DNA from: Dimorphilus gyrociliatus
Lineage: Eukaryota > Animalia > Annelida
Assembly (NCBI GenBank): GCA_904063045.1
Contig: CAJFCJ010000021.1
Location: forward strand, 186,001 to 250,000
Direction of reading: 5' to 3'
Length of the DNA: 64,000 bases
Of the stretch, positions 39,186 to 48,700 are shown piece by piece (the first letter of the stretch is position 1; each line of letters opens with the position of its first letter). A program made the position numbers and the translations under genes. The notes below the pieces were generated by a model. The model searched no databases and had not been told where the DNA came from. It was given only the letters and a program-made list of their open reading frames with translations.

Positions 39186-39405
39186 TTGATTTTTGCCGTT
39201 CCAACCTCTCACTCAAGCCGCCCGAAAAAGAAATATATACTATAGGTGTAAACAGAAGACAGATAAAGGGATAAAAAAAGAGAAAGTTGCGGTATTAACG
39301 TTTCCAATATAACCAAATCATTTGTCTCTTTTTCACCCTGTTATGCAAATCCATTTTCTTGTTTCCCTCTCCCGGTTCATATTCCCGCCCTTCCCGCCTT
39401 ATTTT

Positions 39406-42400
39406 CTATATGTGCCAATCAACTGATGTGTGTAAATTGTGTTCGAAAGATTTTAAAACCGGCTTCACCTCTTGATGGAGGAACGTTGTAACTTGTTGAG
39501 GAGCTCTACCAATATATTTTGATGGATCCAGTAGTGAATCAAGTTGATCTCGGAGAGAAGAAAAGATCTGTGAGTGCCTTAAACGGCTAGGTAAATCGCT
39601 ATCGCTACCTTGTTCCTTTTATTAAAGTAAATCTGAAGTTTTCTCACAATTAAACTTAGGCCTAGCTTTTGCGTAATAGCAAATTATCTCTATCTGTTAA
39701 GAAAAGGGGTAAGAAGTCCCTGATTATATCTCTTTTCTCTCCCTCCTATCTTTTAAATGTTGCTGTAGACGCCTTTAAAGAAGGGCGTCAGCGTGAACAG
39801 ATGGTAAAGACTTAAAATTTCAAAAGAGTCGGCTAGTATATCAGATAAATCGAACTTTAACCAAAAAAATGAGGGAATGGGGGGGAGGGAAAAGAGAAGA
39901 TAAAATTCCTTTATATTCCAAATATTAATGGTGCTATAGCAATTTTGTTGTTAAACTTGGGAGTGAATAGCACGCAAGTAGTTTTCTTTTGAAAGGAATA
40001 CTAGGGGGATAAAAGACCTTTTTACAAAGGCTTTGAGATGTTTCTTGATCTATATGTTGCGCTCTTGTTTTAATTAACTTCAGAATTACTTTAACGACGC
40101 CGGCGGCTTCATTCTTTAATCTCTTAAACTCTTCGTTACACCTTCTCCTATCTTGCCCGTGCCTTACGGCAGCCATTACAATATTCTCTTGAGCCATAAA
40201 AGGTAACTCTTGCCGAATATGGCGATCAATAACTCTTGGATAGACAACTAAACCCTCTGTCAAACTACACAATGTGCTTAACAAAACATCCGCTGCTAAG
40301 AAGGCTTCCGGTATACAAATTCTTCGATTTGCGCTATCGTCCATAGTTCTCTCGAACCATTGTACAGAATGAGTGTTATACGCGTTTTGTACTAAGGATA
40401 CCAGATGGCGCGCAAAAGAGCAGCATCTTTCCGACCTCGTCGGGTTGCGTTTATATACCAGTGAATCACTGGAATATTCTTTTTCAAACGGTTCTTCCAT
40501 CTCTTTCATGTGAGCTAGTAGTCTTAAATCCGTGCACATCTATTGAAGAAAGAAAGAGATTATATTTATTAACGCCAACTGCAACAACAACAACAACAAC
40601 AACAGCAGTAACAATAGAAATTCTATTTTTGGGTGATATTTGTTTAATATCTTTTCTAAGGAAGGCATAGAAGAAAAGGTAACTACATTTTTCATTATAA
40701 TTAAGACTTTTTGATCGTAGATGATAATAGATTATTTACAAAAAAGATTTATCGATTGGTCATCTTTTGCCTTTAAATCGTATTCGTCAAATTATAAATA
40801 GTTATAACCTTTGTAAATATTTTCATATTTAATTAAAAGAGAAGAGGTTCTTCAATTTTATTTTGTTAAATTTTCTTTAATCAAAATGATACGGGCTAAT
40901 CTAAGTGTTGTAAGTAGAGAAAAATTGGTCCCATTTCATATGGGGTCAAGAGCCGTTGAAATAGCTGACAATGAATGAGAAAGGAAGAAAAAGGTAAAGT
41001 AGCATAAGGACCAAAGAATTAAAAGGGAGGATGAAGTATAGGAAATTGCTGCCAAGTTATATATAAAAAAAAGCATATACAAAACAACTTGTTAGGCCTA
41101 TATTTACTTTGTGAACGGTAGCTCCTAATCCAGCAAGAGCAGAAATACAATCGACGTCTAATTTCCTCGTATAGGTTTGACCACAAATTATGTAAGCACT
41201 ATTATTATTAGTTTAACAAGGTCATGGGTTAGTTTTTATGGAGAATAAATATTATTTGATTATAGTAACCTGCGAAATCCAGCCATTTCCGTAACCAATT
41301 TATCTAAACGATTGACTTTTTCGTGATTCCCATCGAAGAGCTCTAAAAAGCTTGCTTGCGTTCCAGTTGTGCCCTTAATTCCTCGAAATTTAATTCCGTC
41401 TCGTAAACGGCGAATATGTATTAGATCAGTTAATAAATCCTGAATCCACATACAAGCCCTTTTCCCAACAGTAGTTAGTTGAGCAGGTCTGTAGTTGATT
41501 GGTATACAGGTTATTAGTTACCTTAAATTGTTAAAAAAAGTACAGTCCCTGGTAGATTTGAATCAGGTATGCGTTACTCTCATTATATCCTTTCATATGC
41601 AAATATGTAAAACGATACCTTATTCATTTATATCTATGCAATTATACGATAGTATATGGCAGTTTTAAAGTAGTAATAAAGAATATTTTCATTGTTATGT
41701 TTACAATTATCAGTATTATCACGGTATCGGATAACTCTAACCAAATGTAAACTTGCCCTATCAAAGGAATAAATTAATTACACAGAAGGAAAAACTGAAC
41801 TGCAAAAAAATTTTTTTTTTACATATAAAGGAAAGGAAAAGTAAAATAAATCAATTAAAACTAGAAGAAAAAGAAGAGAATGTTAGATTTTTTTTCTTTT
41901 CATTCTATCTTTAAGACGATAATTTATAATCTTTAATTACGCAAAAATCACTGAAGCACAATGATAAATTACTGATATTTCTATTACTTTTTACCTCTTT
42001 CATTTGATTTATAACTTCTGACGAAGAAGGGAGAAAAAAATACAAACGCACATATTCTTTTATAGATAGATATTTTATCGTTCTTTTTTCTCTCTAACAT
42101 ATCTCTCTTTCCCTCTCCCTCCCCCCTCCTCTCTCTCCTCTATTACATCCTTTCAACCGGTCAAATTCTTGTTTATTACATAATCATTTAATAGGTTAAA
42201 AGTAATATATTAATATATAATTGTAAGAATGAGAATTAACTATATTATCCTTTTAGTTTACGTTGTGTTTAATAAAAATTAATTCAGCAGACAAGGACTG
42301 AAAGATGATTTACCATTGATGGTGACGCTAGCGTTTTATTCTGCAACACGAACAGATTTTGTTATTAACAGCAGATAGTACACTTGTCTTAACAAAATAT

Positions 42401-43736
42401 GGTGTTTTTATCGTTGTTTGCTTAGCTGCTTCGTCTATATAGTTCTAGATTGTAAAAAAAATTTTTTGTCAAATAGCAGATTGACAACGCCATCTGTAGT
42501 TTAGTTCTTAATCTCTCTCTCTCTCTCTCTCACTGTTATAGTGAGACTTATAAAGAGAAATTTTGCAATGTTTTTTTCCTTGCTTGCTTTTCTTTATCTT
42601 TAACATTTTAAACTGTAAATTTTATTGTTACTCTAATTTCAAAGCCTCGGTTTCTTTCCTTTCATGGAAAAAAGCCTTAAAGGTTTTTATGAAACCCTTT
42701 AAATGCATATAAAAAACTATATTTATATATGCATCACAATGTTTTGCAACACCACTATCAAATCAAGAAAATGACCACCTACTGCATATGTGTAAGTCCC
42801 AAAGTAGCTTGACTTTTCCATTTTTCAGCAAAACTACTCAATCGATCGATACATCTAGCTAGTTTAGGTAGCAGAATATCAAAAGCATCCCTTATCATTA
42901 TCAGATCTGTATTGTCCGTCACGAAAGCTGACGTCGCACCTAAAAGTAAATAGAAAGAGAATAAACGTCAGAACATTTACATAAGCTTTCCCACTTAAAT
43001 AGCGTATTTATTATCTTAGCTAATAGTCCCAATCAACTTCACAATCTTAACCAAACTATAATAAATAGAATGTTTCCGCAAGTAATTACTGATAGTAAAT
43101 TGCTTTAAGGAATATTTTTGCTGGATAACGTAGATGGTTTAATTGTTATCTTATGTTCTTAAGCGATTAGCTTTTTCAAGTTTGTAAGCTTATTTTGCAA
43201 AGGGTATTAGCTGCCGAATGTGCTTTAAGCCATTGCTTAGCGCAAACTTCTTTAACCCAAGTAACGTAAACATATTAATGTATTGTTAAGTAAATATTAA
43301 CCTGTAATGCTTCCATCTATATAAGTAGTAAATAAATGACCTTATATTACTTTATATATTTATGTTAAATGCATAACGGTCATCCTAATTTACCCGAAAA
43401 TCTAAATAATTAATTATTTCACAAACCCAAATGGATGACACCATTAGCCGACGGGCAAGCAGCGGTAAACGCATTCAAATGAGCTAAAACATCATGTCGA
43501 CACTTCCTTTCTTCAGCTGCGGCTTTCTCAAAATCAATATTTTGCACATTCGATTCCATTTCTCGGATTTGCTCATTAGTTATCTTTAACCCTAACGACT
43601 GCTGACCCTTAGCTAACCAACACCATAATTTCCTCCATGTCGAATAGCGATATTGTTCACTAAATATATTAGCCATAGATTCGGCTGCATAGTGGTAACG
43701 TTGTACGAGCGGGGTTCTAAAGACGTTTCTCTCCAT
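39406..43736 (-). CDS. ADSL: Adenylosuccinate lyase-like protein (divergent signature loop), 6 exons, ~478 aa
   Basis: Exons 43427-43736, 42783-42939, 41270-41488, 41108-41198, 40090-40539, 39406-39615 join in frame and align end to end with eukaryotic ADSL ([75 protein letters not shown]). An in-frame ATG at 43793 could add 19 aa. Confidence 0.93.
40581..40612. repeat. (CAA)n microsatellite in an ADSL-like intron
   Basis: gcaacaacaacaacaacaacaacagcagtaac. Confidence 0.85.
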
Positions 43737-45227
43737 TTCACCAACTAATGGAGACGCCTTTCCATCTAAAGTTCTTAAAGAATAGAACGACATGATAATG
43801 GCGCTGATCAAATCACCCGAATGCCATGACGATCCCCCAAAAGTATGCACAACGTGCAATTATCATTGAATCAACGATTTAAAAACCTTTACCAAGCACA
43901 AGACAAAAACTTCTATAGAAAAAGGCCGATTTAAATTAAATCTACCAATTTTATTATACCATTTTTTACTATATTAGGTTATTAATATAATTTATAGGCC
44001 CAATTTAAACTTAGACTACTAACAAAGTAAAGAAAACATGTTGTATTGTCTACGTATGTTTATAAAGCAGGGAAGATGAAAGAAAGCGAGAGAGAAAGAG
44101 AAAGAAAGAAAGAAAGAAAATAGGAAAAATAGAGAGAAAGATAGAGATAGAGACAACAGACACGGTGAGAAAGTGAGAGAGAGAAGGGGAGGGGGTGTTA
44201 GAAAAAACGATTATTTCAACCATAAAGGACAACTCGTTCAGTTGTGAAATAGCTGCTATTTTTCCATTCTCTTTCTTTTAATACTTTTATCTTTAGTATA
44301 AATTAATTTCTTTGAAATTTTTAGAAAAGGAATTATTAATATTTATAGTTCCTGTCTTTGTCGTAAGAAAAAAGACAATTCTTCCTCTTTTTGTATAATA
44401 GGTTGATTTTTTTCATCCCCTTGTTATCATTTTACGTCTTAGTTGTTATGCTTCCTATTTCTCTTGGAAACTATTAGACGTCATCGGTATTTTCATACTA
44501 AATGAGGAAGGAGGGTAGGAGGTAAAATTTCATTTATTTCCTATATAAGAAAATATGTACAGAACGTACGTTATTTTATGCTATTATTTTTTCTCTTATT
44601 CTCTCTTTACTCACGAAAGAGAAAATGAGGGAGAGATGGAGAGAGAGAGAGAGAGAGACGGAGAAAAAGAGAATTATAGATACATAAGAAGCAATAGGGG
44701 AAAAATAACAAAAACAAATATTTAATATAGTGTAGTTATACTAAAGAATAAGGAAAAATCGACCCTTAAAAATAGTATAAGGTCTATGTTTATTAAACCA
44801 TTGCGAAACAGTTCAATTAAGTCAACAGTAGTTCAAAAATAACGGCCATGTGTGAAGTGCCAAAAAAGTACTACAACTCCTTACTTAAAAGAGCTTTTTT
44901 TTCATTTCGCACGAACTCTACCCGTTTTTGATTAATATAAAATATTTTTTGTAGAAATTGTCTTATTTATTTAGGCCTAGATAATTTTATTTTGTCCAAA
45001 TTATATAATTATCGAAAGGAAAATTGGCATACATACACAAACTATATATTTTATATGAGGGCGCTTTTTATAGACTTAACGATGAGCTGCATTTACGTAT
45101 GTGTAACAGATTTTTAATAGGAATGTAATTAACCGGCAATATACTATACACTAATAGCCTTCAGCTACAAACGTGAGTTTCACAATTTTCACGGATAGAT
45201 TTTTTAAAAAAAGGTATTTTATAAGAT

Positions 45228-45717: not shown

Positions 45718-48700
45718 ATGATCGAAATGCAGACGTCGAATCACAGTATGAATTTGGAAATTCCCGAAGGTCTTGGTGATATGTTAAGGGATTTTACCGT
45801 CTCCGTCTTAAGGCAAAGACCGTCGGATTTATTTGATTTTGCCGCAGAATACTTTGAAAAGGCTAGACAACAGAGAAGGGCGAAGAGCGTTCCCATGTAC
45901 ATAATTGTTGATGACGAGAACGAGGCTCAGGAACCGGATCCGGCTTTCTTTAAGCCAAAATCTAATAAAAAGGGACGATTTGCTAGAAGGCAATCTGTCT
46001 CAGCGGAAAGATACGATCCTGAAGCGGATGAAGATGACGAAAAAGTTGTCCATCCAAAGACGGACGAGCAGAGGGATCGTTTGGCTGAAGCCGTTCAAGG
46101 TATCCTAATCTTCCGCTCCTTAGACACTGAACAGATGCAGGACGTCTTAGACGCCATGTTCGAGAAGCGAGTCGATTCTGGACAGAGAGTTATTGAGCAG
46201 GGAGACGATGGTGATAATTTCTACGTTATTGATCATGGCACTTTCGATGTACTTGTAACCAATGAGGGCCAGGAACGGAAGGTGCACGAATTTGTGGAAA
46301 AAGGTACGGATGTTTACCTTTTTGTATTATTTACATTGTATAAATACTTTATACTTAAACGAAAAATGAGATATGGTTTTATAGTTTACTCTTTTCACCT
46401 TTTCCCCTCCTTTTTTTCATTCTATCCTACAGTACTTATATCATGGCTTATTAATAAGACATAATTATAAATAGTTGCAGGAATTTTCGTGACATGATAT
46501 ACAAAATACGTTGATTTATAGGATGAATATGTATTTTAATTGATATACTGTATCCACTAGCTAGAACTGTGCATCTATATTTGGTACCTACGTATATATT
46601 CTCGTTTTATTGATATATAATTATTCAAGCCATCAAATGAGATTAAAACAGGAATTAATTCAGATTATTACTTGCCTCTGAAAACAAAAATATATATTCT
46701 TCTAAGATTATTAACTCTTCAAATCGAATTTATTCCGAATGAGTTTACGGTAGAGATTAGTAGTGGCAGTCAAAAAGATACTAGTCTTTTTTAGCGTCAC
46801 TAGATATAGTCCCGAATTAGACTTTGAAGAAAAAATTTGCAAATCATTGACATTTTTAAAACGAGACGACCCTGGTCTTAATTGTACCACTGGATAGACA
46901 AAATTAACTAAAACATCTAGACTTATTATACATTATTAAAGCCAGACTAACATTAAAGATAACAAAGAAAATGACGCTTTCTGTTCTATTTTATCTTTGA
47001 ACGCTCAAATAAGTATATATAATTTCTATAAGTTTCTTTTTTTATAATCTCTCCCACATAGCTAAGTTTAAAAAAGTATGAATAGGATTAAATTATAGGA
47101 TTAAAGCCATATGACCTTAACTCAGATAGAATATAGCATCATATAGAGATACCACTGTTTAAGGCCTCATAAACTGATAAATAACTTTAAAAGGCGAAGA
47201 AAAGTAGCAATTAGAGAAAATATTGTAAAAAAATCTAATACATGTTCGATAGATGTGATTAGAATAATAAATCGGTAACCCAAAAGTGATTGAACCAGAT
47301 AAGAACCAAAATAGGATCGAATATCTTTTCTTTCTCTCTCTGTCTCTCTCTCTCTCGCTCTTATTCTTATCATAAAACTGCTGTAATATAAGTAAAAAAT
47401 GGTTAAAATAAAGCAACATACGCTATTTGACATCAATTGTTCTTTGTAAGAAGTCTATAGTAATTATATGTTAAATTATTCATTTTTCCGATTATTTAAT
47501 CACATTTTATTTATGAGAATAGCAAAAATAATTATGAATCTTTATATCGGCTACGCTTCAGAATAATCAAACTGATACATAGGATTAATTGGTGTTAAAA
47601 TGGTAATAACCTTTAACACATATACACAGTGAGACAGAGAGAATAAGCGAATAAGCGACAGGGTGTGAGAAACGAGCAGTGTATAGAGCGACAGAGAGAG
47701 AGAGAGAGAGAGAAAATGAGAGAAAAAGAAGGAAGAGATAGATTTTTAGATAGATAGATGGATTAGGTCGAAAGAGGAATATCGACACTAATAAACAACA
47801 CGCTTACATTCTGACTAATATAGTGAGAGAAAGAGTGATTAATCAAAATTCTAATAGTAGTTTTGTTAATTTATGCTTCTCTTTAATTGGCTTCATTTTA
47901 CTTGCATTAGCCCAACGTTTCCGGTATGCTTATTTCTTTTTTCACTATCTAAAAAAAATAGGACAATATCGTTTCCACCTTCACCTTTTATTTCTAAACA
48001 AAGTAAATCTGTTGATCATCTACGAGGAAAGCATTTATGTATTAAATTACTCATGTTTTTCCCAATTGAACAAAAGAAAAGAATTGAAGAATAAAAAAGG
48101 GAGAAGAAGAACACTTTTTATTTTCGTTTTATACTGTTTTTCATTTACAATTAATTGTCATGTGCAAATTTTCCAGGACATATTCATTTAGTATCTTTTC
48201 ATTAACCATTTTAATTTCTACCTTCATTTCCTCTCATTTTATCATATTTAAAAAAAATAGACAATGTCTATTAGAACTTTCACAAGCAAAAAGTACTTAA
48301 TGATTAACGATTTATGCGTAGACTAATTAAAAGTATAACATAAATATTGTATAGAAATTTGAAATCAGTACAGTATAGGCCTGTTGAATTTAAGCACATG
48401 TGTATGAATTTTCAAATGACACGTGCTTTCTAGCTATTTGACAGATAAAAAAAGAATGTATAATAAAAATTCTGACGGAAATAATCCATATTTCAGATTA
48501 TTAATATATATTATATAAGAGTTTGTATTACATTTTTTAAGTATTTAATTCTTGTTTTACAGAATGTTTTCTTCCATTAAACCATATGTATATATCATTT
48601 AACAGTTGTATTGTTCACTCTACTTGTTGAACTGTACGTTGTATATCATAATCAAGAAATATTTACAACCCCTATCAGCCCATATCGACCGATCTGTTCT

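Follow-up and report, generated by a model that had tools for sequence, protein, structure and literature searches.

The G-S-S-x-M-P-x-K-x-N-P loop of the fumarase/aspartase superfamily is among the most conserved enzyme signatures known. We report here on an adenylosuccinate lyase (ADSL) gene of the tiny marine annelid Dimorphilus gyrociliatus in which the corresponding segment, the C3 loop, is rewritten; the gene is located on the minus strand of a 64,000-nucleotide stretch of contig CAJFCJ010000021.1 (positions 186,001 to 250,000), which we refer to as the window and whose own numbering is used throughout. In other ADSLs the loop reads FEKxQIGSSAM(A/P)YKRNPMR. Ser289 (human numbering) is the classical base, and which of the loop serines actually serves this function is still debated (PMC6301967; 10.1101/2025.08.15.670494). 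In the closed structure of the human-type enzyme, Ser289 points away while Ser290 bonds the carboxylate of fumarate, so that Ser290 is favoured as the base (PMC6301967); the domain-3 residues Arg396, His400 and Arg404 form hydrogen bonds with the backbone at Ser289/Ser290 and thereby order the C3 loop (Van Laer et al., PMC6301967). In a yeast-based scan that covered >8,000 variants of human ADSL, His159, Ser289 and Ser290 all proved intolerant of substitution (10.1101/2025.08.15.670494).

A second described system invites comparison by analogy only, namely that of duck delta1-crystallin and other inactive members of the fumarase/aspartase superfamily, proteins whose catalytic capacity is likewise in doubt although they preserve the fold and most residues of the active site. 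Delta1-crystallin is a duplicate that exists beside an active delta2/ASL copy, and it keeps the Ser-Ser loop. The worm differs in both respects: it has no known active duplicate, and the change affects the loop itself.

Measured against animal ADSLs (the human enzyme; PDB 2J91 and 5NX8), the D. gyrociliatus protein belongs to the same length class, is encoded by a six-exon gene and is about 63-66% identical over the parts compared. It differs from them in the C3 loop, in an Asp at the position of Ser290, in a Thr for M299, in the lid contributed by domain 3, and in an insertion in an N-terminal R-Y motif. The loop region, which is encoded by the fifth of six exons, comprises the following elements:

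40441 to 40488, minus strand: signature/C3-loop segment F277-P292, in which E280-V287 is the rewritten part and T-R-S-E follows
40465 to 40467, minus strand: codon GAT of Asp284, aligned to human Ser290
40468 to 40470, minus strand: codon AGT of Ser283, aligned to human Ser289 and positioned six residues before the Lys
40438 to 40440, minus strand: codon ACG of Thr293, equivalent to human M299; a lineage-specific change of exon 5 at a position held by Met in 119/119 other sequences

The worm loop runs E-Y-S-S-D-S-L-V where animal ADSL has x-Q-I-G-S-S-A-M-(A/P), and it is one residue shorter. In net terms, eight codons have been replaced and one has been lost, a new Ser follows the Asp, human M292/P293 have become L/V, and M299 has become T. 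The worm sequence hence no longer conforms to the superfamily signature: K-x-N-P is kept, whereas the G, the second S, the M and the P/A are changed. The original prediction, made from the DNA letters of the window, had already read this loop, its GAT codon, its shortening by one residue and the exchange of M-P for L-V; minus-strand translation of 40441-40488 and the alignment to human ADSL bear all of this out. It had furthermore placed the Asp at the catalytic Ser289. Here the substitution is real and its assigned position is not, as the Asp aligns with Ser290 and the position of Ser289 is still occupied by a Ser.

In the HMMER alignment with human ADSL, one gap is set after the Lys of F-E-K, and the worm-human pairs are S-G288, S-S289, D-S290, S-A291, L-M292 and V-P293 (the numbering of chain 5nx8_A is that of the native protein plus 3, consistent with K295 and R303). 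A MAFFT alignment of 120 database fragments, described below, reproduces this pairing; the equation of Ser283 with Ser289 depends on the placement of the single one-residue gap. The column of Ser290, at which the worm has Asp284, is otherwise occupied by Ser in 117/118 and 37/38 other sequences. Since the worm DNA reads TCC AGT G at the very place where the oyster has TCC AGC G (Ser-Ser-Ala), we also considered an alternative alignment, in which both old serines may have been retained, two residues having disappeared ahead of them and one having been added behind.

Outside the loop, the equivalents of H86, T111, S112, T158, the acid H159, Q241, K295, N297, E302, R303, R329, S334 and R396 are all kept, in agreement with what had been predicted for all of these except N297, R303 and R396. 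Among 61 columns that are conserved at a level of >=90% in 38 diverse full-length representatives, the worm protein keeps 55 and departs at 6, five of which are found in the loop while the sixth is a Leu-to-Met change near R329. Further elements that distinguish the worm protein are:

40123 to 40149, minus strand: lid segment R390-K398 (RRRCNEEFK), with R396 kept and Q397 changed to R, H400 to N, and R404 to K
43689 to 43697, minus strand: two-residue insertion in the N-terminal R-Y-A-S motif, which reads R-Y-H-Y-A-A

The lineage-specific changes of exon 5 at columns that are near-invariant elsewhere, other than Thr293, are:

M325, human L331: Leu in the other sequences
S351, human N357: Asn in the other sequences
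R391, human Q397: Gln in 116/116 others
N394, human H400: His in 106/113 others
K398, human R404: Arg in 104/109 others

R392 is a further change in the lid, at a column that is variable elsewhere. The loop has gained two acidic residues, and the lid has gained two Arg next to R396. Because the changed lid residues are among those that order the C3 loop in the closed structure (PMC6301967), loop and clamp have changed together. At the N-terminus, the motif P-L-x-x-R-Y-A-S-x-E-M reads R-Y-H-Y-A-A-E-S-M, an insertion present only in the two dinophilid sequences among the 40 that were aligned. The segment that holds this R-Y motif presumably lies near the substrate in ADSL.

The uniqueness of the worm loop among hundreds of ADSL sequences is the sole point that could be raised in favour of an assembly or sequencing artefact, or of a recently inactivated pseudogene. 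The structure of the gene and its transcript speak to this alternative:

39406 to 43736, minus strand: ADSL coding region with 478 codons and a stop codon, from the spliced frame and matches to ADSLs in the PDB
43425 to 43736, minus strand: coding part of exon 1 (residues 1-104), which holds R13-Y14 and RHD (the His86 equivalent)
42783 to 42937, minus strand: exon 2 (residues 105-156), which holds ATS (T111/S112) and TH (T158/H159)
41270 to 41488, minus strand: exon 3 (residues 156-229), from spliced contigs and the joined frame
41108 to 41198, minus strand: exon 4 (residues 229-259), which holds GQTY (Q241)
40089 to 40539, minus strand: exon 5 (residues 260-410), which encodes the C3 loop, the region around R329/S334 and the lid of domain 3, and within which fall four intron positions that are occupied in other animals
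39406 to 39614, minus strand: coding part of exon 6 (residues 410-478 plus stop), with a partial ADSL_C match
42938-43424, 41489-42782, 41199-41269, 40540-41107 and 39615-40088, minus strand: five introns, all GT..AG, from spliced contigs of public runs

We recognised the gene by translating the three minus-strand frames and comparing the products with solved structures, which revealed a homologue in six pieces; exon-wise phmmer searches against the ADSLs in the PDB gave E values of 1e-60 (exon 5), 4e-34 (exon 1), 5e-13 (exon 2) and 2e-7 (exon 4). When joined, the six exons form an unbroken frame of 478 codons that begins with the ATG at 43736 and ends with the stop codon at 39406-39408, so that the predicted intact reading frame over six exons stands. 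The transcript contigs extend to at least 43808 in the 5' untranslated region and past 39300 in the 3' untranslated region. Pfam searches with single exons gave no match for exons 1, 3 and 5, a silence that we attribute to the fragmentary nature of the exons and to the lost signal of the loop; with exon 6 alone, ADSL_C (PF10397) reached an E value of 5e-6 and 27.1 bits (cut-off 32.7), the domain being split by the exon 5/6 boundary. The intron that precedes exon 5 contains a (CAA)n microsatellite at 40576-40606.

An assembly error is contradicted by two sets of contigs. Logan contigs, assembled independently from what is probably the source run, show 0 differences over 39300-43900, with 40569-40617 left out of the comparison as a repeat. 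Spliced contigs, which derive from runs X2 and X9, add to this: in a run from a different study, exon 5 (40089-40539) is represented with 0 differences and continues directly into exons 4 and 6. The run of a third organism (X9) yielded a spliced contig of 2186 nucleotides that covers all six exons and is about 6% different; 33 of the 40 differences listed, the last of them at 40456, are synonymous, which bears on selection on the gene and not on the loop itself, as the whole loop is not contained in the differences listed. Contigs of a marine metatranscriptome run (X8) are 95-100% identical to 40140-40385, 43450-43705 and 39300-39440, from which we conclude that the worm or a close relative was present in that environmental sample.

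The same loop recurs in other samples, with synonymous differences. A word search with exon 5 retrieved 120 fragments, and one of these, P0001 (97% identical), has the worm loop; P0001 and P0121, which belong to one cluster, derive from two further samples. All 118 other fragments, from animals and fungi, read Q[IV]GSSAM[AP]YKRNPMR. An exhaustive search of 1.84 billion representatives of 50% identity clusters found GSSxM in 123 of the approximately 130 representatives that include the loop, next to a handful of unrelated odd loops; the variant is rare. A scan of metagenomes for the DNA of the variant loop gave no match. In two related dinophilid contigs, L001 and L002, the amino acids of the loop are identical to those of the worm, and the loop DNA differs at three sites, all of them synonymous. 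L002, a contig of 18.3 kb, contains the entire gene with the same six exons, and over the whole coding sequence 29/478 residues differ, none of them in the loop (dS 0.75, dN 0.036), which gives a ratio of nonsynonymous to synonymous substitution rates (dN/dS) of 0.048 and marks a live, selected gene. For exon 5 against L001, dN/dS is 0.022. Because the relatives share the loop with synonymous changes only, these comparisons indicate that the rewrite predates the split of the lineages and that the new loop is under purifying selection. Given the intact frame and the low dN/dS in addition to the independent assemblies, we regard the chance of an artefact or pseudogene as vanishingly small. Collectively, the worm ADSL variant is real, rare, expressed and selected.

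The original prediction had considered the gene a retained paralogue. This view was not supported: the gene has the properties of the ADSL orthologue of its lineage, to judge from its synteny with a neighbouring gene for a regulatory subunit of protein kinase A (PKA), its dN/dS, its expression and splicing, and the fragment search. No closer canonical relative was found among the fragments from the exon-5 search; the whole genome was not searched, and the source runs of the fragments are not named. The neighbouring gene encodes a PKA type II regulatory subunit (RIIa and cNMP-binding domains; 45718-46290) and is arranged head-to-head with ADSL, and L002 (2384-3004) shows the same arrangement in the related species.

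Non-canonical C3 loops are also present in six further ADSL-like cluster representatives (P0227, P0198, P0239, P0226, P0252 and P0258), none of which has the dinophilid loop. P0227 is without the Ser-Ser pair, has lost H86, T111, S112, T158 and R396, and departs at 19 conserved columns, compared with 6 in the worm; by its sequence it is a candidate for a true pseudo-enzyme.

What, then, does the worm protein do? The reading that we favour, to which we assign about an even chance, is that it is the dinophilids' own ADSL and probably active by means of a co-adapted loop and lid. The enzyme would still bind adenylosuccinate (SAMP) and succinylaminoimidazole carboxamide ribotide (SAICAR), and would most likely still cleave both. 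Either the retained or the new loop Ser would act as the base, and Asp284 would pair with a new lid Arg or assist in proton abstraction. In favour of activity speak the 55 of 61 highly conserved columns that are kept and the loop-clamping lid residues that changed in step with the loop. The lid has changed as well (two new Arg, H400 to N, R404 to K), and the new loop has since been kept under strong purifying selection. In a more specific form, which we put forward tentatively and with a clearly smaller chance, the protein would be a fully working ADSL without the second loop serine, its remodelled Ser/Asp loop would be latched by new lid Arg residues, and an essentially one-step origin by imprecise intron loss and palindromic, templated fill-in would have been followed by rescue through the lid.

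Several observations weigh against an active enzyme. In the human scan, substitutions of Ser290 abolish ADSL activity, with the exception of S290T, which retains about half of it (10.1101/2025.08.15.670494); an Asp at this position should hence inactivate a canonical enzyme. A carboxylate placed there should moreover repel the carboxylate of fumarate, with which Ser290 forms a hydrogen bond (PMC6301967). Gly288, Ala291 and Met292, which are nearly invariant elsewhere, are all changed in the worm. As regards gene copies, two profile searches retrieved no full-length dinophilid protein, one of them being swamped by relatives of a bacterial scaffold and the other being length-limited, and a second, canonical ADSL may exist elsewhere in the genome.

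The intolerance of human Ser290 to any change but Thr is also what one would cite for a catalytically dead or impaired ADSL that has been retained for some other function, such as SAMP/SAICAR binding, the scaffolding of a purine complex, or the poisoning or tuning of tetramers; adenine nucleotides would then come from salvage or from a second, canonical ADSL. Such a protein would fit the replacement of G288, A291, M292 and M299, all near-invariant in >230 other sequences, and its altered lid, in which H400 and R404 are changed too, could be read as a lost closing mechanism. The local Pfam signal points in the same direction, as no Lyase_1 match is obtained over the worm loop while a canonical fragment gives one. 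A dead enzyme is, however, difficult to reconcile with a whole-gene dN/dS as low as that measured against L002 and with the fact that no other catalytic residue has been lost, when the degenerate P0227 has lost many. The changes are limited to the loop and the residues that contact it, and all of them are conserved between species. The fragment search offers no closer canonical paralogue, and the gene families of the D. gyrociliatus genome are reported to be the smallest among annelids (PMC7854359). On balance, we consider a dead ADSL unlikely.

Altered chemistry or an altered substrate is a further alternative, in which Asp284 would act as the general base, or in which another succinyl-containing or fumarate-yielding substrate would be processed. 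A carboxylate is a competent base, and in the closed human structure this site is located beside the fumarate moiety (PMC6301967). Two new Arg in the lid and the N-terminal R-Y insertion change the charge and shape of the pocket, and the long stem branch described below, together with the strong constraint that came after it, would fit an adaptive burst. At the same time, none of the residues involved in recognition of the nucleotide and of the succinyl group has changed, there is no known second ADSL to take on the housekeeping reactions, and there is no precedent for such a change among the superfamily sequences examined. We therefore think altered chemistry quite improbable.

The position of the loop within the gene offers a view into how it may have been rewritten. 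Imprecise intron loss is a described phenomenon in plants, flies and other organisms (PMC4443532), and the worm gene resembles these cases in that a coding indel or replacement coincides with the very position from which an intron was lost. The codon of Gly288 is interrupted by a phase-1 intron (Q-I-G / G-S-S-A-M) in the oyster (L006) and in two annelids, Paralvinella (L003) and Ridgeia (L004); Priapulus (L005) and exon 5 of the worm are without it. The rewritten codons of the worm are therefore located where an intron has been lost. Exon 5 of the worm also lacks three more introns that others hold, near residues 331, 361 and 391, and the changed R391/R392 flank another lost intron, located after Gln397 in other species. 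Whether TATTCCAG in the loop DNA may be a remnant splice acceptor has to be set against the oyster codons at the same place, from which TCC AGT G may simply represent the old serine codons.

The rewritten codons also carry a symmetry of their own:

40453 to 40477: near-perfect palindrome of 25 nucleotides, with 12-nucleotide arms, 1 mismatch and a 1-nucleotide centre, over codons Y281-Y288

It is the only palindrome of that quality in the coding sequence, and any such palindrome arises in 74/5000 shuffles of codon order. We rejected a functional RNA hairpin at this site: in the relatives, synonymous changes disrupt the outer arms and are not matched by compensating ones, and the palindrome consequently looks like a scar and not like a hairpin.

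These features allow a mechanistic proposal. The loop would have been rewritten in the common ancestor of the dinophilids by one or two complex DNA-repair events, and not by stepwise point mutation; an imprecise deletion of the intron, combined with fold-back, self-templated fill-in during the repair of a break, would leave a palindrome behind. Such an event would account for the simultaneous change of eight codons within an invariant motif. It would differ from the described cases of imprecise intron loss in striking the catalytic loop of an essential enzyme and in its palindromic, templated-looking fill-in, and the link to them is one that we infer. The origin of the loop by intron loss and palindrome formation is, on the strength of this gene comparison, suggestive. 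In a tree of 23 sequences, whose deep nodes are unresolved, the dinophilid stem measures 0.76 changes per site, the median end branch 0.22, and the two dinophilid tips 0.04; judged by these branch lengths, the dinophilid branch is one of a burst of change followed by stasis.

Three considerations tell against this proposed origin. For one site, an overlap with a lost intron is expected by chance in about 1 in 5 cases. Three adjacent introns have been lost cleanly, which fits a cDNA-mediated loss better than a deletion. The long stem, moreover, may just reflect a generally fast evolution of the lineage.

The intron map holds two further observations. The last intron of the worm gene (39615-40088) splits V-V-K / E-Q-G, where Paralvinella, Ridgeia and Priapulus read straight through and have their nearest intron about 18 codons upstream, after Gln397; as far as these gene structures permit a judgement, the worm intron may have been gained or relocated. 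In Paralvinella (L003 144-1724) and Ridgeia (L004 1-1028), the annotated ADSL corresponds to the 3' half only, and an ankyrin-repeat (SOCS-box) gene is found <3 kb upstream of the exon that encodes the loop; either a long intron harbours a nested gene or the annotation is split.

The worm gene is most aptly classed as a new ADSL variant, with a change in a loop that is near-invariant elsewhere, and it represents a natural test of which residues of the ADSL loop are needed. As the loop has been replaced, the gene is constrained and the lid has changed, enzyme assays and swaps of loop and lid should show which features of the loop are required and how their loss is compensated. If the protein works without the second serine, it would represent the first case in nature of a fumarase/aspartase superfamily member that has escaped the GSS signature, and it would bear directly on the question whether Ser289 or Ser290 is the base. 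The proposed origin, if true, would amount to a multi-residue jump in an essential active site, brought about in a single mutational event as the genome was compacted. An inactive protein, on the other hand, would be a clean, conserved pseudo-enzyme in central purine metabolism, and this would raise the question how these worms make adenosine monophosphate.

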